From positions 36,316,225 through 36,380,224 of the forward strand of contig NC_069003.1 in the NCBI RefSeq assembly GCF_001194135.2: a DNA stretch of 64,000 bases. The letters run 5' to 3'. How positions within the stretch are numbered: the stretch's first letter is position 1; every line of letters starts with the position of its first letter. The notes under the pieces are model-generated. The model did not search any database, was not told the origin of the DNA, and saw only the letters and a program-made list of their open reading frames with translations. This stretch comes from Octopus bimaculoides (Eukaryota). Positions 25,201 through 55,100 of the stretch are shown here, in pieces. The position numbers and the translations under genes were made by a program.

Positions 25201-28200
25201 TACTTGACTGCTGTTTATCTTCAAATCCTGCCATGGTCAACTTGCCTTTCATCCTTTCAAGGTCGATAAAATAAAGTACCAGTCAAATACAGTGGTGAGG
25301 GAGGAAGTGGGGGCGGGGGGCAGTGTAATCTGACCCTCCCCCCTCAAATTTGCAAGTCTTGTTCCAAAATTAGATTTATTATTATTATTATTATTGGCAG
25401 AATCATAAGCATGCCAAACAAAATGTTTAGCACCGTTTTGTCTGTCTCTAGGTTCTGAGTTCAATTTCTGCTGAGGTTGACTTTGCCTTTCATCCTTTCA
25501 AGGTTGATAAAATAAAGACCAGTCAAGTCCTGGGGTCAATGTCATTATTATTATTATTATGACTCGGGTTCAGTCCTATTTCTGGTAGAATTTACATGGG
25601 TGGCAGGTTACTACCTCTAACCTTGGGTATCCACTGGCTTTCAATAGTACTTAGAACCCGCCTGATAGTCTTTCCTGTCCCTAAGAGGCAAACTTTCTGT
25701 AGAAGCTCTACAAAATATTCTATTATTATTATTATTATTATCATTACCTCTGCCTTAGCAAAGGTGGAGGTATTGTTTTCAGTCGCATTTGTTTGTCTGT
25801 CCATGGACAAGATATCTCAAGAACTGCTGGATGGATTCAGATGAAACTTTCAGGGATGTTTGTCCTCTTGACTGGCACAAACTGATAAGATTTTGGGATC
25901 AATCTGGTACTGGACATGGATTCTGGATTATTTTTCCGTTTTTTTTACTTAATTTTTGAGAGCGGTCAGGTTCATTTTTAGTATTCTTGTTTGTGAGAGC
26001 AACTGAGTTTATTTCAGGTATTCTCATTTAAAAAATCATCTCCGGCTAATCGTTGAGAGGACATTGGTCTTGCCTTGGCAGAGGTTTGCGCTCTCTGAGT
26101 GCTCTTATTATTATTAGAGCCACCAAGAGAAGCCTTCAGTGTAATTTCTTGGCTTACTAGAAGTAGTAGCCAGTTTCCTTTGAACTCTCCCTCTATTATA
26201 TTAAAGACAAATACATGGAAATAACACATATGAAGTAGACGTGGATAGCTTTTAGAAAAACAGTACAGTCGTAATATTTAGGAGTGCTATGCACCAGTGA
26301 CGCAATATTGTTGTGCTACAAGTCTGGTTAGTGTTGTTGACACTCCTTCTCTCTCTCTCTCTCCTATTTCCCATTGATTTTTGTTTGACTCAGCTGTCTC
26401 TCTCAACTTGCCTCCTTCCAGTCTTTCTCATTCAGGTAATGTCATTGTCCTGTCCTTTTTGTTTTGTGCCTTTCCTACCTGAAATTTTTATTCTGTGGGT
26501 TGATAAGGTTTGTCGTCCGCCTTCTTGTGTGCACACTTAACACGTTGTCTCTCATTGTGAGAGCTATCACCAGGTAAATCAATGCTGTTTGGAATTTAAT
26601 TAAAAGTTCTTTTCAATAAAATTATGATGGTTAGTTATAATCAAGTATATGAATACTTCAACATTTTACTGTGGAAATCAGATCCGACCCCTCAAAATTC
26701 CTTTAGCCTTAAATGCAGAAACCAGTTTGATATACCAATCTAATTTTTTGGTTGAGAAATGTCATGTTTTGAAACTATTTTCTCTTGAGATATGTCAAGT
26801 TTATGGAGACAACGTGACTTGTAAGAAATATTTCAACAGCTCATCTTGGTTTTTCATGTTCAAAATGTCAAATGAAGAAACAGGGAAATTTTAAAATCAG
26901 AAACGAGGAAATCCTGTGTTCCCACTTTGACAGAAGAACATCATCAGTCTTCAATTTTTTGTGAATATTTTATAAAATAATAATAATAATAATAATAATG
27001 GATTCAAATTTTTCTACAAGGGCAGCAGTTTGGGGGGAGGGAAGGAGTCAATTACATCAACCCCAGTGTTCAACTGGTACTTATTTTTTTCAACCCCAAA
27101 AGGTTGAAAGGTAAAGTCGACCTTGGTGGAATTTGAACTCAGAACGTAGCGACAGGCGAAATACCCCTAAGCATTTCGTCCAGTATGCCAACGATTCTAC
27201 CAGCTTGTCACCTTAATAATAATGAAAATAATGATAAGGTGGTGAGCTGGCAGAATCGTTAGCACGCCAGGTGAAAATGCTTAGCGGCATTTCGTCTGTC
27301 TCTACGTTCTGAGTTCAAATTCCGCCGAGGTTGACTTTGCCTTTCATCCTTTCAAGGTTGATTTAACAAGTACCAGTTACACACTGGGATCAATGTAATC
27401 AATTTAATCCCTTTGTCTGTCCTTGTTCGCCCCCTCTATATTCAGCCCCCTGTAGGCAATAAAGACATTCATAATAATAAGAATAATAATTTGTTTCGTT
27501 TCCAGAAGAAAGTGGTATTACCAAAGCTGCAGTTGAAACTTCCAGACATGTCTATGCCAGAGAGTTGCAATATTAATGTGTTTCGCACTGTGGCTGGTAC
27601 AGCTGCTAAGACACAAAGCAGAGTGGCACATGTACCCAAAAAGGTAAGTTATAATCGCAGTCATAATAATGTTTGTTTGTTTGTTGCAACTCTTGTTAGT
27701 GTGTGTGCTTGTAGTAGTGCTGATGAAGTTTGTCATTATTTAAGCTGGTGTTTTGCTCTAATTAACAACATTCTAATGGAAGATCACTTTGAAACAGAAA
27801 GTTTGTACCATCGCACCAGAGGTGTTCTCCTGTAGGTTGGTACTGGAATAGTTATGGACATAGTGCAGCAGACTTATGCTAAGAGGCATTCCAGCCATGG
27901 TCATCTTTTTCTTTGCGGTCTGTGGTGGATTTTACTCACTGGTTAGAATCATTCATTCTTTGAATGGTTCATAATAATTTGAGGGCAAAGAATGAAGCCA
28001 AGCATGGCAATGAGGTTCTGCCAGGAACCACAGAGTTGCAGAACAAACAGAAAATTCCCAGAAAAGTGCATGACTCAACTACTCAAGGCAAAAAAGTATC
28101 CATCACAGATGACATTATAGGATAGAATAACATACATGCTTATACAGCTTCCATTTTTATTTCCGTCTTATTATCATATAAGCTTGCCAACAGAATGGCT

Positions 28201-31045
28201 TCATGTTCAGTCCCACTTCATGGCACTTTAAGGCAAATGTCATCTGCTGTAGCTTCAGGTTGACTAAAGCCATGTGAGTCAATGATGAGAGTTGGTGACA
28301 GGAAGGGCATCTGGCTGTAGAAAATCTGCTTCAATAAATTCTATCTGACCCATGGAAAAGTGGACATTAAAAACGATGAGGTTTATTTTTGAGAACTGTG
28401 TGTGAGTGTGCCAGTCATCACTTCCTCTACCCTATCTTCCCACCATTCAGTCCCCACTCCTATACCACCTCTATCTATCCCTCGCTCTTGCTGCCTCCAC
28501 CCATTCACCCTTCCCATTTTTCTGCCCCCACTCTCTCTTCTCTTCACCTTCTTGTACCTTAAGGCCCCACCCTGATACATCGTCACACCCATCTTTATCT
28601 CTCTTTTCAATTCCATCCCTAATACTCGCACTCAGTGAATGGGGATTTTGGTCTTACGAATTACATGGCACCCTCACACACACACACGCCAAAAGGCTCC
28701 ATCTGGGGTAGACTTTTAGTCCAACTCGTGCAGAAGGTTGTTGGGCCCTCAGTCTAAAGTAAGATCGTAAGATTAAAGAACTTATTAAAAAAAAAGAAGT
28801 CATGAGATAACATCAGTAATTCTTCCTCTGCAGGAATAAAATTCGTTTGGAAATTTATTAAATCAAAGCTTCGCCCGATTTTTCGTTTATACGGGTGGGG
28901 TGGGGGTGAAAAGTGTCGCGAAAGGCCTGGTTGGAGGCCCAACCTTTCGAGTTCTTTTACAGAGCTTTGAAAAACTGAAGGACCTCTGCAATAAGTGTGT
29001 GAATCTGCTGAGAGGGGGAATATATTGAATGAAATCATAATTAACTGATCCTCCTGTGTTTTCTTTTACCCAAAGCCAGGAACTTTTCAGCACTCTCTCC
29101 TACGCACACACACACACACACACATATGTATAGATCTATGTGTGTGTATCTTATTGTGTGTGTATGTTTTTATGTATGTGTAGGGTAAGGTTGTGTGGTT
29201 CGAAAGTCCGCTTTGCCAGCCATGTGGTTTTCAGTCCCACCAACATTTAACACGCTAAGATCTGAAATATCTACTTGAACAAGTTTGTTCTCTATGGCCC
29301 CAGGTCACCAAAGTCTTGTGATGTACTTGGGAATCGAAACCCACGTGGAAGCCAGTCATGCGTGTATTCTCATTCTTAGTTCAACCACAACTTGTTTATC
29401 TATATCTTAATAGACTTGTATTGCACTGTATTTGAGTGCGCGCCCGTGTGTGTAGAGAGAGAGAGATACACAAGTGCACCTGGTGACACCGCCACCGACA
29501 TTCAACACGTTAATATCTGAAGTATCTCCTTAACGACAGATGATTATTGTACTCAAAACGGGGATAGAAGAGCTGTTTCTTAATTTTATCTCCTTATATA
29601 GAGAAATTTCAAATCAATCAATCCCGCTTCCTCCTCTCAACTCTCCCTGCTTTCAACAATTGTCACAAATAGCTTTTCTTCTTCTCTCCTCCCCCCCACC
29701 ACACATTTTTTTTCTCCCTCTTGCTCGTTTTTTCTTTTCTTCTTCCTTCTCTCATTACTTCTATCTCTTTCCCTTTCTCTTTCTTTAAACTTTCTTCTCT
29801 TCTTCCCTTTTCTCACTCTTTCTATTTCTACTGCCATGTGTAGCTTTTTTTTCTTTTAATTAAAATCCTCGTTTTTTTTTCTCGATCCACCACTCTCACT
29901 TTTTTTTATTTCAATTTTTTTCTTTTTGTTTTCCTGGAAATTTTCTCTTTTTTGTCATAAATATATTTATATCCCTCATTTTTCATCTTTCTTTTTTCCT
30001 TATCTTCTCCCCCCCCCCTTTCCGCAACTCCTTGAGAAAGCATGACTCCTCTCTCTCTCTCGTGATGCATCTCCTCCTCCGTCTCTTTTATACCTTTCTT
30101 TTTAACCTCCACTTCCGGTTATTATGATGTCAGCCGAAATGACGTTTCCAGGAAGTGATTGAGGTTGGTTGTTAGCGCTCTTCTGATTGGTCGTTTCACC
30201 CGACGGCATGGAGGCGTGGTTAGTCACGAGGGAGGCGTGTGTTTGCGTTCATGTCCTCTTTATTATTATTATGTGTCTACACACTCCTCTGTGTGTGTGT
30301 GTGTGTGCTGTCGCGTGCGTCGTTTGCGTTTGTACGAGCGCGCGTGTGTGTGTGTGAGTATGTTGTGTGCGCGCTCGCGCGTGCTGACGTGATCGGACGT
30401 TGTTTCCTTACGCAACCATTCCTTGTTGTTTGTTTGTTTGTTCGTTCTGTTTCGCTGTTTTCCTTTCTTCCCTCGTCAGTCATTTCGCTTCGACTCTTCG
30501 CAACATTCTCACACGATTCGCTTGAGTCGCTCGGTCGTTCACCCGACTTTTTTCTTATTTACCCAACAAGTACGATCGCTTACTTTTACATTTAATCAAC
30601 TCCCCACACAAGAGACTGTTTTGTGCTGTGATCGGAGAGCCCCCCCACCTTCGAAACAACTTCAATTCGAACCTGAATCAGAACAAATTTACATAGAAAC
30701 AAAGTTTCCCTGACTTTTTTTTAATTATTATTTAAAAAACAAAAAAGAAAGTTCAAACAAACAAACGTCGACAATTATCACAAGAAGACTAAGAAACATT
30801 TCGTCACTATGAACGTGGTCATGCTGGAGCCCCCACTTTACCAACACGGCCCTGGGCCCTGGTTTCGACCGGCTCCCTTTTATTGTGGTAGACGAAGTCA
30901 CTGTGCTTGTAACATGTGTTACAGGGCCAACGGTGGCGGTGGTTGTTCGCACCAGGTGTGGATAAACATGTCACAACAACGAACACGCCAGGTAAACAAA
31001 TTGGGATTTCTTTGTGATTGTTAATTGCTATTTGTAATTATGTCA

Positions 31046-31078
<33 letters not shown>

Positions 31079-34000
31079 GTATATATTTATATATATGTGT
31101 ATATATATCTTTGCCAGTTGCCTGTATAACTTGCATTTTTTAGATTTGAACATTGAATGGGGTGTTTGTATGAAAATATACTTTCCCCGAAAGATTGCCC
31201 CCCCTCCACACACACATACATACACACACGCACACACAAAGATATTGATTGTTTTGGCGGCCTTGTGTTTTGTGGATGTGTGTGTATAAGCGATGTAGGT
31301 TTGAATTATGAATATAACATCATAGACGTATATATAGAAACTATGTATTACTCTACGTTGACATTTGTATACAAAACATACATTATTACCATAACATGAT
31401 CATAAAAATATAATTCCGTTATTTGTGCGATTGTGTGGACAAAGAGACATTAATACATATGTGGACTGTTTAAAGGGTACACTTGTGTGTGTATGTTCGT
31501 AGCCCACGAGGTTTTATTATTATTTTAATATCACCTGGAAGTTAGGGCTTGCGATATTTGTTTTGGTTCTTTACTTTCAGAGTTCAAATTCCGCCGAAGC
31601 CATATTTGCTTTTCATACTTTCGGGGTTGATAAAATAAAGTTGCAGTCGATTACTGGGGTCGATGTACTTAAATTGTACCTAAATCAGAAACGTGTTAAA
31701 TTAGTTGGGAGTTGAGAGACAACGTCAGCTACTTTTAGAATGATGGGATCAATATCGTTTAATAGGGATTTTTTGTTGGGAAAACGTGGTTTGAAAAGGG
31801 ATTTCTGGCGTCTGCTTTCATCTTGGGTGCAAGGGGGTGCGTAATCTGTCTCGTAGTGCATAGACATTACACATCCTTGTGCCCGTTTCAGCTGAAACGG
31901 GTGGGGCACAAGGATGGTGTTTGTGTGGTGTGTAACACGCTAATTATAAGAACAGAATCTGTTGTTGTAGTGGTAGCAGTAGTAGTAGTAGTGATGGAGA
32001 GAGAGAGGGAGAAGATACAGAGGATGAACGAGTGGCTGTTTTGTGTTGATGTAATCAGCCAGTGCGGATGTCCTTTGTTTTGCATGTGGTCAGATTCTCA
32101 TTCGTGTGAGGGATGAGGGTGGAGACAGCAACAACAAGTAATCAGGAAAAATCTGTTTCTGGTCCTGAAAACCAGCGAAAAACCCCAAATATCTGTGATG
32201 GATGTTTCGCCAATGTACTCAATGTCCTCGCTCGCCCGCACAGCAACACAACAAATACATGAGGTATGAACGAGGAGTTTGTGTGTGTGTGATAAATATA
32301 TGCGCTCGTTACTTACATATGTTATTCTACATATACACACACACGACCTCGCGAGGAATACACTACCCCCCTCTCTCTCTCTTCCGTATTTCTGTCCTCC
32401 GCGCGCTTATCACGTGCATCTATTGTTATTTCTGCGAATGGCAGAAGAGGATGTGGTGGTGGTGGTGGTCTCTGGGTATTTTGTTTTTTGTTGTCGTTTG
32501 GGATGGGATTTTTAGAAATGGTTGCTCTTTGAAAAAAATAATAAAGCATTATATATATAAAAAAAAAAAAAGGCATGACTACAGATGTGTGCCCNNNNNN
32601 NNNNNNNNNNNNNNNNNNNNNNNNNNNNNNNNNNNNNNNNNNNNNNNNNNNNNNNNNNNNNNNNNNNNNNNNNNNNNNNNNNNNNNNNNNNNNNNNNNNN
32701 NNNNNNNNNNNNNNNNNNNNNNNNNNNNNNNNNNNNNNNNNNNNNNNNNNNNNNNNNNNNNNNNNNNNNNNNNNNNNNNNNNNNNNNNNNNNNNNNNNNN
32801 NNNNNNNNNNNNNNNNNNNNNNNNNNNNNNNNNNNNNNNNNNNNNNNNNNNNNNNNNNNNNNNNNNNNNNNNNNNNNNNNNNNNNNNNNNNNNNNNNNNN
32901 NNNNNNNNNNNNNNNNNNNNNNNNNNNNNNNNNNNNNNNNNNNNNNNNNNNNNNNNNNNNNNNNNNNNNNNNNNNNNNNNNNNNNNNNNNNNNNNNNNNN
33001 NNNNNNNNNNNNNNNNNNNNNNNNNNNNNNNNNNNNNNNNNNNNNNNNNNNNNNNNNNNNNNNNNNNNNNNNNNNNNNNNNNNNNNNNNNNNNNNNNNNN
33101 NNNNNNNNNNNNNNNNNNNNNNNNNNNNNNNNNNNNNNNNNNNNNNNNNNNNNNNNNNNNNNNNNNNNNNNNNNNNNNNNNNNNNNNNNNNNNNNNNNNN
33201 NNGTTTATGGGGAGAAAAATATTGAAAAACATCAATACACTAGAGAGTGAGAAAGAAACGAGGAGGGTTGTCTTGGGATTTTCCTCAGAAAATATTTACT
33301 TTTTCTTTTTTTTACGGAAAAGGCTCCTCCCGTGGTTTTTAAATGCAAAAAAATGGCCAAAATCGGTGCGGAGTGGGATAGTCGTGGGGGGGGGGATTAA
33401 AAAATGAACTTATGTGGTCTTGATCCGAAACTCTTCTCCCCACCCATTCGGAAAAAGTTTCCCCCACAAATTTCTTTATAATCGTAATCTATACCGTTTG
33501 GAAGGTATCTGTATAAACTTTCATTAAAAGAGACCCATTTTCCGAAACTCCTCTCCCCAATCCCTCAGAAAAATTCTTTGCCACAAGCCCCTTACATACT
33601 CTGTATTTTCATTTCGTTAAAATGTATTCATTTTTCTGGAAGTTATGAAGCAACAAAGTCGGGGGGAGGAGTGGGGTTCACATCTGTAGTTATACCAAAA
33701 AAAAAAACCCAGTTAACATTAGTGGTGGTGGCCTTTATATATGTTATTGTTGTCGTTGTCCCCAGCATGAAAGTAAACCAACTCACTGAACCAGTTGTTG
33801 ATGTTTTCCTCTGTCACACATCACGTCACACAGACCTCACCCACCTTCCACCCTTACCCTGTTGCTACCTATAAATTCACTCATTGTTTGTTTATGGATG
33901 TGTGGTTGTAGTTGTTGTTTGACCTCCAGCTCAGTCCTTATAGAACAGACCTCTGGTCAAAAATATTCCACCTGTGACCCTCCTGTCTTTCTCTTCTTAT

Positions 34001-34182
34001 GTGCAAGCAACTCATGACTAATTGAGTTCAATGTGGTCTTTTTCTAAGATGGTAAGGTGTCATTTCAGGGAGAGATTTGGCTGTTATTTCTTATGGGTCA
34101 AGCTACCATGAAAAGGCTCCCTCATCTGTGTAATTGTAATAATGGTGGTAGTGTGCTTGTATATATGTGTGTGTGTGTATAT

Positions 34183-34225
<43 letters not shown>

Positions 34226-36870
34226 ATTTTTACTGGTTTCAGTCATTAGACTGAAACCATGCTAGGGCACCCTATTGCTTATATCGCCGAACTGCCAAGT
34301 TACTGGGATGTAAATACACCAACACCGGTTATCAAGTGGTAGTGAGACACACACACACACAAACATATACGACAGGCTTCTTTCAGTTTCCGCCTACCAA
34401 ATCTGCTCCCAATGTGCCACGTGGTGGTACTGAACCCGGAACCATGTGCTTGGGAAGTAAACCTACCACACAGACGCATCTGTATATGTATATATAGCAT
34501 AATTTATGATAATGATTATGTGTGAGGAGTGGGGAGGGCAAGAAATATTTAATGTGTGTATGTCTCTCTTTATTTGGGGGAGAAATGTAGGATTTATTGA
34601 CTTCCTCTTCCTGGTGATTATTTTATCTCTATTACCTCATTGTTTACACTCTTTGACCTGGTCACTACCACCACCACCACCATCATCATATCACATCCGT
34701 TTGTCTCTGGCTGCATGGATTGGTCAGATCTATTCTCACCTCTCACTTCTCCTTTATCATCTGAACAGCACTGTGCTTAGAAAATTACTATTTTTAAATC
34801 TCACAACGAGAGATATTCAGCAACAGTACTTTGGAGTAAAGATTACTTGCCAACATAACATGGCAGTCCTGGTTTAGGACGAATGTTGCTGTAATTTAGC
34901 CCCAGGCTATATGACACGATCTGTGTCCCTTGTTCAAAAATATAAGATCACAGATCGTGTTGTACAGCATCATTCATCACCAGATAGGCTTGTTGTTGTG
35001 ATCTGAAGATGTTGTTTGTGTGTTGGTAGCCAGCAAGCAGTTGAGACCATCTCTTAGATATGGAAGCAGTGCTTCATGTAAACTTGGCCTTTTCTCAAAG
35101 AAGCTGTTTGTCAATGAAATAAGTACCAGCTTGGCATTGTGCCAAAGTGAAAAAAATAAATCACTGTTGTTGTTATTATTGTTTTTGTTGTTAGATACCA
35201 GTTATGTATTGAGAATAACTTCAATTATATTTCTCCTCAACAAACTGTGGCCTTGTGCCAATATGAAAAGCCATTGTTATTATTAGTATTATTATTATTA
35301 TTAATAGGAAGTTTTGGCACAAACTACAGAGAACTGAAGGAATTATTATTATAATTTATTTTGTCCTCGTTACCTGAGTATGACACCTTGCAATTGTGAA
35401 AGTTCTAATTAGACTGGTTCATCTCTCTCTCTGGTCTGAGAAAGGAAATATATTAAACACCAGTAATACATTGGCTGCCATTCAATCAGGCGTGTACCTC
35501 CTTACCTTCTCAAAATATTGGCCTTCTGCCCACACAAACGAAATCATTGGTGCTCAGTTATTATTACTATTGTTTTTTTGTGTGTCAGATAGCAAGAGTC
35601 GGTAGAGCATTGAACCGACTGCCCTAAATGCCTCGTCATATTTAGTTACAACTCTTTATTTACATTCCGAGTTCTAACCGTAGTCTCGTAGTCTGTTTAT
35701 CAAAGAGATTTAGTAAATAATACTCAGCGTGTTAAAGATATTTCTCACCACCCCACCCGCTCCTTTTGCCAGTGTAAAGAATTCGTTAGTTTTGTTAGTG
35801 TTTAGCTGTTGGTTTCCAGCCATGCCCATTCCATCATTTTAGGGGCTGTTAAGCATGTCCTTCCCCTATTTTAAAACAGTGGTGGGTGTGATTTCAAGGG
35901 AGATTTGGCTGCTATTTCTAGCAAACTGACTGACCCTATAGGGACTCTTATTGACTTGTCATCTATCATCTTCTGGGTCAGCAAAGTACCAGTCATGTGT
36001 TGGGTCAATTTAATCGATTAACTCCAGATTTCTGGCTCTGTGTCTGTGATATTCAGTTGTGCCTCTTTTATGTTCTAAGTTCAATTCCAGCCCGGGTCAG
36101 CTTTGCCCTTTCCTCCTCCTCCTCCTTCTGGGGGTTGGTAAAAAATAATGATTCGTTCATTTGACTCTACACAACTTGTCACTGAATGGCCTTGAGCTAA
36201 AGTTAGAGAGAGTTGTTGTTATTAATCTTAGAATATGTTGAGGGGAAGGGATTGGCATAATTATTGCAGCATTGGTAAACGATTCCTTGCAGTGTTTTAA
36301 ATTTCTTTAAATTAAAATCTCTCTGAGGTCAATGACCTGAACCACCAGACTAGTGGTGGGGTGGGGTGGGGCTGTCAACTAAACTCCCCCCCCCTTCCTC
36401 CAAGAATTCTTCTCAGAGTTCATTGTCTTCTGTCTGTGTTTTGGTTTTTTTCTTTCTTTCTTATATTTGTTTCATTCAGACTATGGCCATGCTGGAGCAC
36501 CACCTTGAAGAATTTTTAGTCAAACAACTCAACCCTAGTACTTTTTTTTTTTTTTTAAAGTCTGGTACTTATTTTGTCAATCCCTTTTACAGAACCACTA
36601 AGTTATGGTGGTGTAAACATACCAGGGCTGATTGTTGTTAGGAGTTGGGGGCAAACACACACACACACACTATATATATCTTTTGGATTTTCCTATCTTT
36701 CCTGTTTCCGTAGAAGAGCCAGGCTCAAAATGGAAAAACCACTCTTTTCTTTCTCTGAGTATCTTATTAATACTTTGCATGTGCAACGTCCTCACATTTT
36801 TTCTTATTGAATCAAGTACGTCAAAATCAAATCAAGCATTATATCCAACAGATGTTAAACAATGATGATA

Positions 36871-36912
<42 letters not shown>

Positions 36913-39900
36913 TAATGATGTGACAACAAAAGAATGAATGAGACCTCGATATTATGTAAAATAGAGGAATTTATAACTATAATATGTGACAACCAACTAA
37001 TTGTCACATATTGTATTTATAGATACATATATATATATATATATGTACATATCATCATTGTTTAACATCTGTTGGATATAATGCTTGATTTGATTTTGAT
37101 GTACTTGATTCAATAGGTCTCCTGAAGCACGGCATGTCGCCCTACGATCCAGGGGTACTTTTTGAGTGGGCTGGTTATGTGGCACTCATGTCGGTTACAG
37201 CTATGAACTCGCTCTATTTGCCGGGTCTTCTCAGTCACAGCATATCTCCAGAGGTCCTGGTCTTTCGTCATTGCCTCTGTGAACAAATGATGGTTGGCAA
37301 CAGGAAAGGGAAACGTCTGGCTGTAGAAAATCTGATTCATACAAGTAGGGAAAAGTGGATGTTAAATGATGGAGATGGCAGTGGGTGGTGGTGTGATTGA
37401 AATGTGACTTAATATGATTTTGTAATTATTGTGTTTCCACAGGAGGTGCTGAAGAGACCGACCATCACACCAGATTCCAGCAGTAAAGTCCCTGTAGCCA
37501 TCAGGCAGCGTTATCTGAATCTGATCATTGATGAGTATGTGAAACTCATTGATTCAGAATGGGAAGCCATGAAAAAGGTGAGTTAGTTAAAGTTACTTCC
37601 ATCAGGGACTCGGTGCAGCAAAATATCAGTGATGGGCCTACACAAAAAAGGTTGATGTGGACCCTTTGAATTTTCTCCTGTCTCCCCTCATCTTCAGTCA
37701 CTCCCAAAGTTCTGAATTTTTTTTTGTTATTGTTTGTTGTGTTTAGGGAGAAGAAGAAGAGAAAGATGTTTATCGTAGCTGCAATACCAAAGTTGGTTAT
37801 TTAAACAAAGCCATTCACCTCATCAAACGTTTGCGCAGCGGCTGTCTTGGCACACTCAAGAAGCTGCTGCCATCCACCAACCCGCCACCAGCACCTTGCA
37901 AAGAGACAAAGAAATTAGAACATCAACTCACAGGTGAGTGAGCATTGCACCCTTAACTTTTTCAGCTTCATCTTTTTTAAACTTCCAAAATCAGTTATAT
38001 TTTGTTGTTGTTTAAACTACAGGTGAGCCTCAACTCAACAGATCTACAAAGGGATGTATTACTGTTGCACCCATCTTGTTTGTTTTCTTAAGTACCTGTT
38101 AAGAATTGGAGATTGATGTAATCAACTTACCCCCCCCCCTCAAATTTCGGTCTGCACCTATAGAAGAAAGAATTGTTGTTGTTGCTTTAATCTTGAAATG
38201 ATTTTTGTGTTTCTTTTTTTTTTTTAACTTCAGGTCTTGCCCTTTACGAAAGAGTAAAACAGTATATTTTGACAGAGGAGGAGTTGAGAGAGAACCACTT
38301 TCCACGACCCGAAGGATTGGGACGTTCCAAATATTATATATCAGATGTCACCAAAGAACCTTACCTGCCCAGTCAGTATTCGTTTTTTTTTTTTATCTAT
38401 TTACCTGTACATGGCTTACATTTAGAAGATTCTATCAATCTTTTCTTTTTTACTGAATCGCTAATTTAAGCGGACATAAGCAAACCAACACCAGTTGTGT
38501 AGGTATATATGTGTGTGTGTGTGTGTATGCATATAGTCTATTATATTACCATATTTTGCATTTGCTGAGCTGTCAAAGCATGGAGTTCATTATTGTAAGG
38601 TTTTCTGTGTCAGGTAACCATACGAGTTGCTAGCATAGGTTTATAGTTGGTATAGAAGATAGGAAGCCTACGTATGTCTTTTGTTGTTTAGTTCCATATC
38701 ATCTCAGACAGGGCAAACCCGAGACCAAAGCCTTCCAACTATGATCAACCCATTTATCTTTTTGTTGGCATTTCATATCTAAGACTACATGACCCAATGT
38801 GTCCCTCTTTCTCATTTCAAGGTGTTGGGATGTATAGTTTGAGGGAGATTTAACTACTATTTCCAGCCAAGCAATTTGCCAACATCAGACAGAAGCCGAT
38901 GGAGGCAGTTTGTCTTGAGTTACAGTCACTGTTTAGCTTGCTGTGATCAAAGACATTCTATCTATGACCATCCCATCGTTTTGTTTGTCTAGCACTACAT
39001 TATCCAATATGTCTTTCCCATTTTAAGACGTCAAGATGTGATCTGAGAGGTGTGTCTGCTAGTTTTAGCAGGCCACAGCTCATATCATTGGCTGGTAATT
39101 GCATGTATAGCAACAGTTCTGTGATTCTCGTGTACTTAAATGAGCCTCAATTTTGCTGATTTTATAATGTTGTTGTTGTTGTTGTTGCAGGCGATGAGAG
39201 GTTTTGTTGCCGCTGTGGAAAAACATACCGAGTTACAAGCAGTGGAAGAGCAGTTGTGGAAGACGAGTGTCTCTACCATTGGGCAAAACCTGTTCGAAGA
39301 CGATGTGAGTATCTGATAGGTTCCTGCTATGATTCTTCTATTTGTGGCTCATTTCTCCTATGGACAGGTCAACATTTGCTGGGAGACAAGGTGACAGTAG
39401 CTGGGTGTGTGGGGATACAAGGTGACAGCTGGGGTTTTTTGCCTGAGAAAGTCAGAGTTGGGAGGAGACAGATGTCCTCAAACCAGGGAACTGGTTAAAA
39501 TGGTTCTGCCACTTACCACTTGGATAGCAATAACAATAAAAGGCCACAACACATCCAGAGAAGGTTGTTTATTGTTAATGAAATTAATCTTAATATAAAC
39601 CCATTTGCTTGACTAATTCAGCCATCCACTTAACTGGTATTTATTGTTTAAAAAAACTTGTTTAAGGTCTTCACTTGAGTTACTGATTGGTCTTGTGTTA
39701 TCCCTTCAGATGGAAATACTATTGAAACTCGATACAGATGCTGCCAAGGTGAGATTGGATCAACAGGCTGTGAAGTTGGTGTGGTAAGTCATCTCAGTTT
39801 TTAATTTTTACACATTGTTCAATTACTTCTTTCCTTTTTTTTTTTCCATTCTGAATTCACCATTGTCACTGTAATTCTTGTCTGCACACATACACCATAT

Positions 39901-48860: not shown

Positions 48861-49480
48861 CCGACTAAATAAACCCTCCAATGGCTGAATACCGTAGCAA
48901 TGGCCTTTCACATCTCTTCAAAAGAAAACCAATCTGCTTCCATCAAAATCATTAATGGATCTCCCCAACATCTTTAACAACGAAAGTTTCCCAATGCGTA
49001 ACAACATATGGAGCAAGTATATTCACTCTTTACCTTTAGGGACCCACATTTTGGTTCACCACTTGATAACCGGAATTGGTTTGTTTACGTCCAAGTAACT
49101 TACCAGGTCGGGCGTAAGAGCCCGATGGAATATGTACCAGAGCTTCAAGACTGTGCCCCAGCATGGCCACAGTCCAGTGACCGAAACAAGTAAAAGCTAA
49201 AAGAAGACACACAAATACAAACTCAAGAGTCGATCGACATCCACTTTACGCCTATAAAAATACATTCTTCAGTTAGAACTGCATTCACATGTCGGTTGCC
49301 TTGTTGGGTTGTGAATGTACACCAGTATCTAAGCAGTCATTTATGTTATCACCTCCGGAGCTCCCCACCGCGCATTTTTTTCCCTTCATATTCGTTCCCA
49401 GCCAGTTGTTTTACACCTATTAGACTAATTTTTTTTTAAATTTTGTCACCGGGTCAAACGCTTTAGTTTGACCCAGATCT

Positions 49481-49787
49481 CTAGTGTGAGACACGACGTA
49501 TAGCGACACATTCTCTGGCTCCCAACTCGCGGCATCTGCTGCAAACTCCGGTGTTGCCACCCGTAACGCGGAGGAGAGAAAGGACAATAAGTACAGGGAC
49601 CTGACCGGTTGCCGTCGAGACGTCAGGTGTTCTGGGACACCGTGCTACCGATTTCCTCCACAAAATAGGTAGAGCGGTGACTCATCCGAAAAATAAGCCC
49701 TGCAAGATGGAGTGGCTACTGCAGCCAGTGTCGCTGTTCATTCTCCGAGGCAACGCCATCGCGGTCATTACAGCAGAGTGCGGCTGA
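49481..49787 (+). mobile_element. C-terminal restriction-like endonuclease (RLE) remnant of a CRE/NeSL-type non-LTR retrotransposon
   Basis: Translates to LV*DTTYSDTF...ATRNAEERKDNKYRDL, then after a frameshift to VAVETSGVLG...FLHKIGR...ILRGNAIAV. This is the WD-T / AE..K..KY / VET.G / RGNA motif series of RLE domains. Confidence 0.8.
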
Positions 49788-50205: not shown

Positions 50206-51927
50206 GTGCCTTCCTCTAACTGACTATTGTTTTCGATGTATGTGTGTGTGTGGAGAGAGAGAGAGAGAAAGAGACACACACACATAAGCTTGTGTGTGCG
50301 TACATGTATGGTGACATGCGTCCCCCCCCCAGCTTGTTTTCTCTCCCCACCTGCGACATACGTAGCACCGTCCACTTTGTTCTTGCCATCCCATCAGTTT
50401 CCTCGATAGCGTTATTCACACTCACGCACACACACTCACTTTCTTTCTCCCCCCAGCTCTCTCATAAACACTTTCATTTTCACACACACTCACTCTCTCA
50501 CTCCCCTTTCTCTCATACACACATACTCTCTCTCTCTCTCACACACAGACACACACACACACACCCTTACATATTCGTCACCCACTTAATTATTGACACT
50601 TGCCTAATATTTTTAGCAGTTGTCTGTTTCACATCTAAACATAGACGTCCATTAACTGATACATTACTGAGGCATTAAAGTAACTTTACGGACAGAGTTT
50701 CGGATCGGGACGCCCACACAAGTTGTTTTTTCTGTTTTCACAGGAATTTTTCCAATTAATTTTTTCACCGCAGCCTTGAAATGAGACTGAAAGGGCTTCT
50801 TTATCTGAAATAAAACTTTTTAAANNNNNNNNNNNNNNNNNNNNNNNNNNNNNNNNNNNNNNNNNNNNNNNNNNNNNNNNNNNNNNNNNNNNNNNNNNNN
50901 NNNNNNNNNNNNNNNNNNNNNNNNNNNNNNNNNNNNNNNNNNNNNNNNNNNNNNNNNNNNNNNNNNNNNNNNNNNNNNNNNNNNNNNNNNNNNNNNNNNN
51001 NNNNNNNNNNNNNNNNNNNNNNNNNNNNNNNNNNNNNNNNNNNNNNNNNNNNNNNNNNNNNNNNNNNNNNNNNNNNNNNNNNNNNNNNNNNNNNNNNNNN
51101 NNNNNNNNNNNNNNNNNNNNNNNNNNNNNNNNNNNNNNNNNNNNNNNNNNNNNNNNNNNNNNNNNNNNNNNNNNNNNNNNNNNNNNGTATTGACGTTTTT
51201 CAATATTTTTCTGCCCGCAAACACATTTACACTATTAAAAAAAATTTGAAAATTTATGACTTTTTCAAACACCCCCCCTCCCCATCGCCATTTTTTCTGT
51301 TCATAATTTTAAAATATTGCAGATCCTGAGAAAAAAATCAAATATTTTCAAAAAAAATTTCTTATACAAATCTTTTTATACAAATCTTATCATCTCCTGC
51401 CACCATTTTGAAGGCTATGGTGAAAAACAAAATGGGAAAATCCTCATCAAAACTTGGAAAATCCTACTTACGTGGGCACATGCACACTAACAAAAGAATG
51501 CAGCTTGGATAAGGAACAGAGTGGTGGTGGTGATTGGATAGTGAAAGCATATTTCTTTTTTTAGAATGCCAGGCAGAATGCTTAGCAACTTTTTGTCTGT
51601 CTTGATGTTGTGAGTTCAAACACCACTGAAGTCGACTTTATGTGTCATCCTTTCAGGGTTGATAAAATAAGTACCAGTTATGCACTGGGGAGAGTTGATG
51701 CAATTGACTTACCACCACCACCACGCTCACCCAAAATTGCTAGTCTTGTGTGAAAATTTGAAGCTATCATTAAATATGAGTATTTAGATAAATATGAGTA
51801 TCTTGCATAAAGAGGCAGATATTTCATGGCTGGTCATGTGATGGTTGGAGAAGAATAGCTGTGAAAGTAGGTAAGTAAGTGCCTACGGAAAAGCAAAGGG
51901 TAATGGATCAAGTCTCATCTCTTTCAG

Positions 51928-53499: not shown

Positions 53500-54473
53500 C
53501 TGATTTACTGTGGTTTCTATGGCTGGATGCCCTTCCTAACACCAACCATGCCAAGAGTGTAGTGTGTGCTTTTTATGTGCCAGAGATGATTGTGCTGGTA
53601 TGGTCATTTGCCATTGCCTCCATGAAACCCAACATTCAAAGATCATGCTTCACCACCTTGTCCCATGTCTTCCTAGGTCTCCCTTTTCCACAACTTCCTT
53701 CCACTGGTAGAGATCAACACTTCTTCACACAGCTCTCCTCGTCCATGTGCATCACATGACCATACCAGCACAATCATCTCTCTTATGCCCAGCTCTTCTC
53801 TCAAGATTCTTACACTCTGTCGTGCATGCACACTGACATTATACATCCAGTGAAGTAAACTAGCTTCATTTCTTACAGGTATGCGCATGTCCTCAGCAGT
53901 CACAGCCCATGTTTCACTGCCATGTAGCATAGCTGTTGGTGCATAAGCATCATACTGTCTGCCTTTCACTCTGGGCGAGAGGCCTTTTGTTACCAGCAGA
54001 GGTAGGAGCTCTCTGAACTCTGCCCAGCCTATTCTTATTCTAGCAGCTACACTCCCGAAACAACTGACTTGATCACCTTGATAATGGAAGCTATTGACTA
54101 CTTCTAGTTCCCCACCCCCCTGGTATTTGATGCAATCTATTTTAGTGTTTATTGTACCTGTGCACCTTCCACATGCAAAAACTATTTTACCTGTTAACCT
54201 TCCTCTGATATTGCTGCACCTCTTATGTGTCCATAGTTTATACCAGGTACATCTTATGGAGTTTCTACCTAAGCCTTTTCTACAGATTGAGCAGAGCCAT
54301 CTAACTGAAGGGATTTGTGATTTGTCTGCTCTCCTATTTACTAAGACTTTGGTTTTTGTTAGATTAGCCGTGGGGCCCTTTGGTTCCAGACTTTGCTTCC
54401 ACACCTGAAACTTCTTCTCTGCTTATTCCCCTCTGTTATTGCCTGGAGGACTACGATGACCAAGACAGGGCTA
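53500..54473 (-). mobile_element. 5'-truncated RTE-clade LINE (RT C-terminus with PHD-like insert), inactive
   Basis: ORF 53673-54404 contains NLTKTKV, LEVVNSFHYQGD, ARIRIGWAEFREL.PLL and MLHGSETW; RGRPRKTWD follows in a shifted frame. The YADD region is absent. Confidence 0.92.
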
Positions 54474-54599: not shown

Positions 54600-54810
54600 G
54601 GGACGCAAACAAACCAACACCGGTTGTCAAGTGGCGTTGTTGGAACAAACATAGATATGTATGTATGAATGAATGAATGTAACGGGCTTCCACGCAGTTT
54701 CCGTTTATCAAATTCACCCCCAAGACATAGGTCGGCTCGGGGCTACGTAGTGGGTCTGAACCCGTAACCGCATGGCTGCAAAGCGAGTTTATTAACTACA
54801 CAGCCAAACC
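54600..54810 (-). mobile_element. SINE S1 copy
   Basis: Reverse complement has gctgtgtagttaataaactcgc...ggttacgggttcagacc and ggaaactgcgtggaagcccg. Confidence 0.7.
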
Positions 54811-54959
54811 CGCATGTATTTTGAGAAAAAAAACAAAAAAACCCTCAGCAAATATTACTGTCGTCCATGTCTCAATAATAATAGCAATAATAATAATAAT
54901 GACCAGGAAACAAAGTCAATCGGTCATGCACTCCCATCATACACATGGTGTGTGATTTT

Positions 54960-55100
54960 TATATAAAAATAAAGGATGTCGAAGCTGTCTTGGCAACCGT
55001 CAAACAATTCATTAGCAACGATGGCGGAAGAACGGAAGTACGCGAATGAGCATGAGCAGATGAAACGGAGGCCGTCGCACGACTCTCCTTCTTCAACGTA
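54960..55100 (+). promoter_or_regulatory. CpG-rich promoter / first-exon region upstream of EIF2B3
   Basis: YY1-like GATGGCGG (55020), tandem ETS-like CGGAAG twice (55025, 55033), and a consensus donor GTAAGT at 55098. Confidence 0.6.
55021..55097 (+). CDS. EIF2B3: Predicted upstream coding exon of EIF2B3 (MAEERKYANEHEQMKRRPSHDSPSS)
   Basis: acgATGG Kozak context; 77 nt open; AC|GTAAGT joins the acceptor at 58017 in frame with the conserved Met at 58034. Confidence 0.5.

Follow-up and report, generated by a model that had tools for sequence, protein, structure and literature searches.

Two transcripts of an octopus REXO1-type gene

The stretch of DNA analysed here (termed the window) comprises 64,000 nucleotides of the Octopus bimaculoides genome (contig NC_069003.1, positions 36,316,225 to 36,380,224 of the forward strand) and carries on its + strand a REXO1-type gene, within the fifth intron of which lies an alternative first exon that is spliced to the exons encoding the conserved core of the protein. 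All positions are numbered from the first letter of the window, which is eukaryotic in character, with a G+C content of ~38%, many microsatellites, repeats resembling short interspersed nuclear elements (SINE-like repeats) and nine assembly gaps. The sequencing runs found to hold the locus were all from one species (coded organism A). Logan contigs of RNA runs were used as the RNA evidence, and depth refers throughout to contig word depth. The closest protein outside the source species (P0001, 63% identical) was derived from a transcriptome contig, and oyster and limpet proteins were among the next best matches, a pattern in keeping with a cephalopod source. The RNA or probable RNA libraries in which the alternative first exon was detected number at least 20 and come from at least seven studies. 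The elements of the short transcript upstream of the shared exons, together with its putative control region, are as follows.

29901-30800, no strand assigned: CpG-rich island, the strongest in the window
30111-30239, + strand: promoter-like cluster of sequence motifs of four classes
30280-30991, + strand: alternative first exon, from RNA contigs (5' end approximate)
30360-30392, + strand: short upstream open reading frame (uORF), 10 codons plus stop, read from the sequence only
30809-30991, + strand: 61-codon coding segment within the alternative first exon, in phase with exon 6
30992-37442, + strand: intron of the short transcript, GT..AG, including the assembly gap 32595-33202

The junction 30991>37443, which an earlier reading of the DNA made without database searches (hereafter the sequence-only reading) had set as the decisive check of its predicted short isoform, was confirmed in seven libraries, in frame and with GT..AG ends. 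Contigs of runs X3, X6, X7, X15 and X16 continued past the donor at 30991 into exon 6 without branching, and the 27 letters following 30992 in these contigs (AGGTGCTGAAGAGACCGACCATCACAC) were identical to window positions 37444-37470. Viewed from exon 6, two sequences preceded 37443 in X3, X6, X15, X18, X19 and X20, namely the new exon (loose end ...TGGATAAACATGTCACAACAACGAACACGC, corresponding to 30959-30988) and exon 5 (loose end ...CACAAAGCAGAGTGGCACATGTACCCAAAA, corresponding to 27612-27641); the acceptor at 37443 is used by two competing donors, 30991 and 27643, within the same runs. The intron between exons 5 and 6 spans 27644-37442 (9799 nt with the estimated gap length). Gap 32595-33202 is intronic in both isoforms, and the RNA contigs span it by both junctions, 27643>37443 and 30991>37443, which places both sides collinearly on one transcript; no reading frame crosses the gap.

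It is highly improbable that the alternative exon belongs instead to a nested gene, with exons lying for example in gap 32595-33202, or that the junction arose as an artefact of RNA-contig assembly. The gap is unread, and the genomic sequence by itself would leave room for an exon within it. However, the five libraries named above cross 30991 into exon 6 unbranched, which argues against appreciable splicing to any exon within the gap and contradicts such a nested gene, while X18, X19 and X20 give the same canonical GT..AG junction when approached from the exon 6 side. In addition, the depths of the two incoming sequences approximately sum to that of exon 6 (17.8 versus 20.3 in X3 and 20.0 versus 16.2 in X6, with looser agreement elsewhere).

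The exons shared by both forms were modelled from open frames and canonical splice sites.

37443-37577, + strand: exon 6, first shared exon, start of the EloA-BP1/KIX-like domain
37747-37933, + strand: exon 7, with junctions 37577>37747 and 37933>38234 each found within one contig in each of four runs
38234-38371, + strand: exon 8, from the model and an RNA contig
39191-39304, + strand: exon 9, first half of CHORD (CCRCGK...ECLYHW)
39710-39783, + strand: exon 10, second half of CHORD
40766-40876, + strand: exon 11, Exo I motif AMDCEM
41105-41220, + strand: exon 12, from the model and an RNA contig
42116-42254, + strand: exon 13, Exo II motif GHSLENDL
42439-42559, + strand: exon 14, from the model and an RNA contig
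43201-43292, + strand: coding part of exon 15, Exo III motif GHDSQEDA, stop codon TGA at 43290-43292

In X3, X18, X19 and X20 alike, one contig of ~1.4 kb, free of branches, contained all junctions of exons 6-15, each bounded by GT..AG, and the 3' untranslated region extends to at least 43449-43477. The transcript composed of a new N-terminus plus exons 6-15 that the sequence-only reading had put forward is therefore borne out as an intact ten-exon chain, with RNA junctions through the stop codon. The predicted short protein has 469 residues (61 new codons plus exons 6-15).

A Pfam search of the short protein identified the EloA-BP1 family PF15870 with an E-value of 3e-32 and a score of 112.5 bits (cut-off 27), residues 66-138 matching profile positions 1-73 and a second stretch being matched in addition. 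The match starts at residue 66, five residues past the splice junction, and at profile position 1. PF15870 covers the KIX-like helical bundle up to CHORD (PMC12129344), and REXO1 and yeast Rex3 have KIX, CHORD and DEDDh domains in common (Daniels et al. 2025, PMC12129344). Because the match begins at the first profile position just after the junction, the short form corresponds to the full KIX, CHORD and DEDDh core shared with yeast Rex3; the intron that hosts the putative internal promoter region lies directly upstream of the first core exon. The CHORD residues C220, C223, C241, H244, C263, C264, C273 and H279 are all present and are invariant across a 50-member family alignment, in which the DEDDh residues D311 and E313 (AMDCEM), D394 (SLENDL) and H443 and D448 (GHDSQEDA) are likewise conserved. 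The C-terminal 150 residues matched solved DEDDh nucleases (SDN1 (5z9x), E-value 2.2e-24; ISG20L2, 1e-15; ISG20, 1e-14), and no match to Pfam RNase_T was obtained in the short protein at E<=1. The family alignment and the structure matches thus uphold the claim that neither the Cys-rich (CHORD) module nor the DEDDh domain is lost, and the short form is predicted to be a DEDDh 3'-5' exonuclease of the REXO1/Rex3 family.

Five further exons are specific to the long form, which encodes at least ~1350 residues.

2002-2116, + strand: coding part of exon 1, with a CCCH-like pattern (C-x7-C-x4-C-x3-H)
13237-15656, + strand: exon 2, 806 Ser/Lys-rich codons, with two acidic FG motifs
19721-19810, + strand: exon 3, with GKKRVAH
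from 20501, + strand: exon 4, entering the assembly gap 20573-20720
27506-27643, + strand: exon 5, ending ...SRVAHVPKK

The CCCH-like pattern of exon 1 was not called by Pfam. Gap 20573-20720 cuts exon 4, leaving its 3' part and donor unread, so that the window does not suffice to derive the whole of the long protein; the exons of the short isoform are all free of gaps.

The putative internal promoter region and the use of the two forms

The CpG observed/expected ratio was 1.06-1.64 in 500-bp windows starting at 29901-30501 (median for the window, 0.34), and these held 24-43 CpGs, the top counts in the 64 kb. The sequence-only reading had let the CpG enrichment continue to about 32.5 kb: the peak at 29.9-30.5 kb is strong, and the continuation through 30.6-32.5 kb is weak (observed/expected 0.63-1.07). 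Other CpG-rich stretches (observed/expected ~0.9-1.3) were seen at 2800-3800, just 3' of REXO1 exon 1, and at 49100-49500 and 54600-55000, past the 3' end of the gene. The motifs of the cluster are listed below.

30111-30117, - strand: ETS site
30140-30145: half-site TGACGT of the cyclic AMP response element (CRE)
30150-30156, + strand: second ETS site
30184-30192, - strand: inverted CCAAT
30210-30218 and 30231-30239: Sp/KLF-type GGAGGCGTG

The dense cluster of two ETS sites, a CRE, a CCAAT box and two Sp/KLF sites described earlier is present and unique in the window: its six hits fall within 130 bp, compared with 49 hits in the whole 64 kb, and it forms the sole 200-bp stretch of the window in which all four motif classes occur together, as counted with motif definitions that were picked after the site had been seen. 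The most 5' end of any RNA contig of the exon is found 40-170 bp downstream of it. These signals point to a candidate internal promoter at ~30.1-30.25 kb that would be TATA-less and CpG-rich.

The 5' ends of the RNA contigs were found at 30280 (X15), 30324 (X3), 30329 (X5), 30350 (X8) and 30353 (X6), with further ends at 30389 (X7) and 30422/30483 (X16), and RNA depth was zero at 30087-30173. None of the alternative-exon contigs starting at 30280-30483 showed an unmatched 5' tail or an upstream joint, including one to exon 5. Such ragged 5' ends lacking an upstream junction indicate a first exon and not a cassette exon. The transcription start site probably lies at ~30240-30350; runs of (GT)n at 30284-30356, which break de Bruijn contigs, leave its exact position imprecise. 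The uORF would be confined to transcripts starting upstream of 30360.

Usage of the two forms was compared from the word depths of the contigs carrying each junction.

X20: short-junction contig 503, long-junction contig 30
X15: short-junction contig 77, long-junction contig 56
X3: short-junction contig 8.4, long-junction contig 9.3
X6: short-junction contig 9.1, long-junction contig 10.9
X18: short-junction contig 26, long-junction contig 109
X19: short-junction contig 4.9, long-junction contig 39.8
X8: alternative-exon contigs ~6, long form unbranched at 43.7

The short/long depth ratio thus ranged from ~0.12 (X19) to ~17 (X20). In X20 the short form was both dominant and very abundant, the depth of exon 6 reaching 722 compared with 16-220 in the other runs. 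That the locus makes two forms, as had been proposed, was seen directly, both junctions occurring in RNA at ratios that were very different between libraries. Since the proportions differ so strongly, the promoters appear to be used independently, and their use looks regulated.

Several repeats were noted within and around the gene. Downstream of the alternative exon, the intronic stretch 31566-31652 has a very high RNA word depth that is attributable to a repeat and not to transcription at that place. Translations of 20730-20900, 31500-31720, 10167-10385 (- strand), 51586-51750 and other stretches share a peptide resembling ...FHPFGVDKI... on both strands, which suggests that these are copies of one interspersed repeat; the stretch at 20730-20900, directly after the gap in exon 4, has a tRNA-SINE-like look. 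RNA contigs differed from the genome at several places in the intronic high-copy repeat at 40116-40206, by A>G and other changes, which most likely reflect divergence among repeat copies and not RNA editing. A transposon-like open frame of 249 residues with a weak PHD/C1-like Cys pattern was read at 53676-54422 (- strand), and a transposon-like open-frame fragment at 18848-19138 (+ strand). Pfam gave no call for this fragment, which we take to resemble a mariner/Tc1 transposase.

The short protein and the question of Elongin A

The reading that best accounts for these results, and one that is very probably correct, is that a second promoter in intron 5 of the REXO1-like gene makes the mRNA of a short, core-only exonuclease that is regulated separately from the long form. 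An upstream promoter would drive the long mRNA, composed of exons 1-5 (at ~2.0, 13.2-15.7, 19.7, 20.5 and 27.5 kb) followed by exons 6-15, while the ETS, CRE, CCAAT and Sp/KLF-type promoter inside the 9.8-kb intron would initiate at ~30.25-30.35 kb and yield a leader of ~0.5 kb, then 61 codons from ATG 30809, spliced from 30991 to the acceptor otherwise joined to exon 5. The product would consist of a unique 61-residue N-terminus, the KIX-like EloA-BP1 domain, a single CHORD and the DEDDh 3'-5' exonuclease, and the locus would switch between this core-only enzyme and one with a long, mostly low-complexity N-terminal extension.

A number of points weigh against this reading. The RNA contigs are strandless, and word depth is a crude measure of expression. 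As contigs break where the two forms merge at exon 6, continuity between the alternative exon and exons 7-15 is deduced from there being no downstream branch and not from one full-length read. Both the start site and the connection between the motif cluster and initiation are positional. The chance of 61 codons staying open, given the composition of the exon, is 0.11. Searches with the new peptide were also negative: HMMER found no homologue of the 61 residues among 1.84 billion representative proteins, a weak result given that the library lacks this species' own copy; a word-indexed search with the 61 residues plus exon 6 returned no candidates; and the coding part had no match at 80% likeness in RNA contigs of organisms B and C (X21 and X22), two other species sequenced in the same study, a comparison that is uninformative because their relatedness is not known. 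Four weak HMMER matches (E-values 1e-5 to 3e-4) were judged to be due to chance, as all align in 3-6 stretches and the two inspected (P0121 and P0124) are internally repetitive and unrelated.

The leader and start codon were largely as the sequence-only reading had described them. No ATG occurs at 30363-30808, and few gap-free runs of the window match the 449-nt ATG-free one in length (P ~0.00025 against a Markov-1 background from 28000-32594, and P 0.05 against the T/C-rich composition of the leader). The 61 open codons and the phase 0 donor CAG|GTAAAC at 30991/30992, matching the phase of exon 6 at 37443, are read in the sequence. The 'good context' ascribed to ATG 30809 stood in part: the codon is there, with A at both -3 and +4, so that its context is adequate and not optimal. 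Translation from this ATG would be the natural expectation for a scanning ribosome and would give a complete KIX domain. The 61 residues contain a PPLY (PPxY-type) motif and seven Cys/His; no Pfam family was found in a search with them, and AlphaFold2 run on the single sequence gave no confident fold (predicted local distance difference test score, 45.9).

An alternative is that the transcript is real and its first exon a non-coding or regulatory leader, the protein, if one is made, starting elsewhere, for example at an in-frame Met further downstream within KIX, or the mRNA mainly regulating dosage, with the 61 residues being functionless. The peptide's want of a detected homologue, family or confident fold, an open frame of a length not rare in this composition and the uORF at 30360 in longer transcripts would all fit this explanation, which is nevertheless considered rather improbable, because ATG 30809 is the first after the 449 ATG-free bases, carries A at -3 and agrees exactly in phase with exon 6. 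Furthermore, the next in-frame Met past the first exon is residue 103, ~37 residues into the PF15870 match, and a start there would truncate the domain. An mRNA reaching a depth of 503 in X20 is also unlike a rapidly degraded by-product.

The sequence-only reading had gone on to call the short form 'Elongin-uncoupled' and separately targeted. As a description of sequence its premise was right, in that the short form drops the CCCH-like motif, the lysine-rich region and both acidic FG motifs. The label is not supported as stated, and the earlier prediction was right about the transcript and went too far about function. A specific uncoupling of the short form from Elongin A and RNA polymerase II, together with separate targeting, the docking motifs being present only in the long-specific N-terminal region, is possible, though we consider it doubtful. 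Consistent with it, the two acidic FG motifs lie in exon 2, where DLFG.DSDEE and DPYEECL.I.NES are conserved with the oyster protein P0002; the lysine-rich stretches and the CCCH-like motif of exon 1 are absent from the short form; and one major partner of Elongin A in mouse embryonic stem cells is REXO1 (PMC7948453). Against it, the short form keeps the whole of PF15870 'EloA-BP1', the only segment named after Elongin A binding, and Rex3's KIX domain could bring it to Rpb1, as suggested by analogy with TFIIS (PMC12129344). A literature search found, among accessible texts, no mapping of the Elongin A contact on REXO1, including to the FG-acidic motifs, which are candidate docking sites and may or may not serve as such. 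Nor did it find a TND/TIM mapping for REXO1. Separate targeting, like a loss of nuclear import, is an inference.

Relation to other REXO1-family proteins

Core-only proteins of the REXO1 family already exist as separate genes in other organisms (yeast Rex3 and mammalian GOR/REXO1L). Past residue 61, the octopus short form has the same KIX, CHORD and DEDDh core as yeast Rex3 and metazoan REXO1, and yeast Rex3 resembles it in having little or no N-terminal extension. In contrast to Rex3, which is a separate short gene, the octopus core-only protein would be made from a second promoter of the gene for the long form, and it adds a lineage-specific, Cys-rich N-terminus of 61 residues. Mammalian GOR and REXO1L are also N-terminally shorter and keep KIX, CHORD and DEDDh (PMC12129344), with database matches named 'exonuclease GOR' being ~580-600 residues long; unlike the octopus short form, they are separate duplicated genes and not isoforms of the REXO1 locus, and their N-termini are unrelated.

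Another parallel is offered by short REXO1 proteins that are predicted for pig, horse, polar bear and one further mammal (P0012, P0009/P0062, P0073 and P0028); they are database predictions and transcript contigs of 524-539 residues (492 for P0062). In these, the upstream part of REXO1 is absent altogether; its place is taken by ~50 initial residues (MSFHSPSPRPRPFPLCS...), which run into the canonical protein upstream of KIX, the shared Cys-rich N-terminus being MSFHSPSPRPRPFPLCSKMHVLLTLNDRGCLVLCSS.... This N-terminus, which may represent an internal alternative first exon, has no similarity to the octopus 61 residues, and the join lies further upstream, so that the KRVAHSP motif is kept in the mammalian proteins, unlike in the octopus short form. 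REXO1 proteins of oyster, barnacle, amphioxus and mammals (P0002, P0004, P0027, P0037 and P0012) contain between one and three copies of the motif (K/R)R(V/I/T)AH(V/S/T)P immediately upstream of KIX; the octopus copies lie at 19757-19777 (exon 3) and 27620-27643 (exon 5), and the short form has none. Given these mammalian entries with a distinct N-terminus, short REXO1 isoforms with an internal start are probably not unique to octopus.

The closest protein match, P0001, carries an equivalent of exon 5 and not an alternative exon. In its contig (L001:1-200; Logan, SRR3436857), which probably comes from another cephalopod, the open reading frame starts at a Met in the exon 5 equivalent, with upstream stops in all three frames, reflecting another short start of REXO1 used by that species or else a retained intron.

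It is common for alternative promoters to supply in-frame alternative first exons. The octopus case is mechanistically ordinary: as in such cases generally, an acceptor is shared, the alternative ATG is in frame, the promoter is of the CpG-island type and the ratios depend on the sample. A literature search returned no paper on REXO1 alternative promoters, short REXO1 isoforms or REXO1 in octopus. REXO1 has been described as functionally uncharacterised, and has been reported to be enriched in promoter-proximal paused RNA polymerase II complexes (PMC12129344).

A more far-reaching interpretation, to which we assign little likelihood, is that the short form is a core-only REXO1 that is regulated, possibly limited to certain tissues, and equipped with a Cys-rich, PPxY-containing N-terminus that redirects the nuclease away from the RNA polymerase II elongation machinery, and that core-only forms have evolved repeatedly in animals, through the octopus first exon, the mammalian MSFHSP... 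first exon and the GOR duplicates. If true, redirected and repeatedly evolved core-only isoforms would point to a second, transcription-independent job for REXO1. For annotation, the locus provides a gap-free, fully RNA-supported model of the short isoform, whereas the long isoform is unreadable in full here owing to the gap in exon 4. For the biology of the family, a natural isoform that corresponds to the exact conserved core, and that reaches up to ~17 times the depth of the long form in one library, constitutes with the long form a separation-of-function pair, which may be used to ask what role the long N-terminal extension plays.

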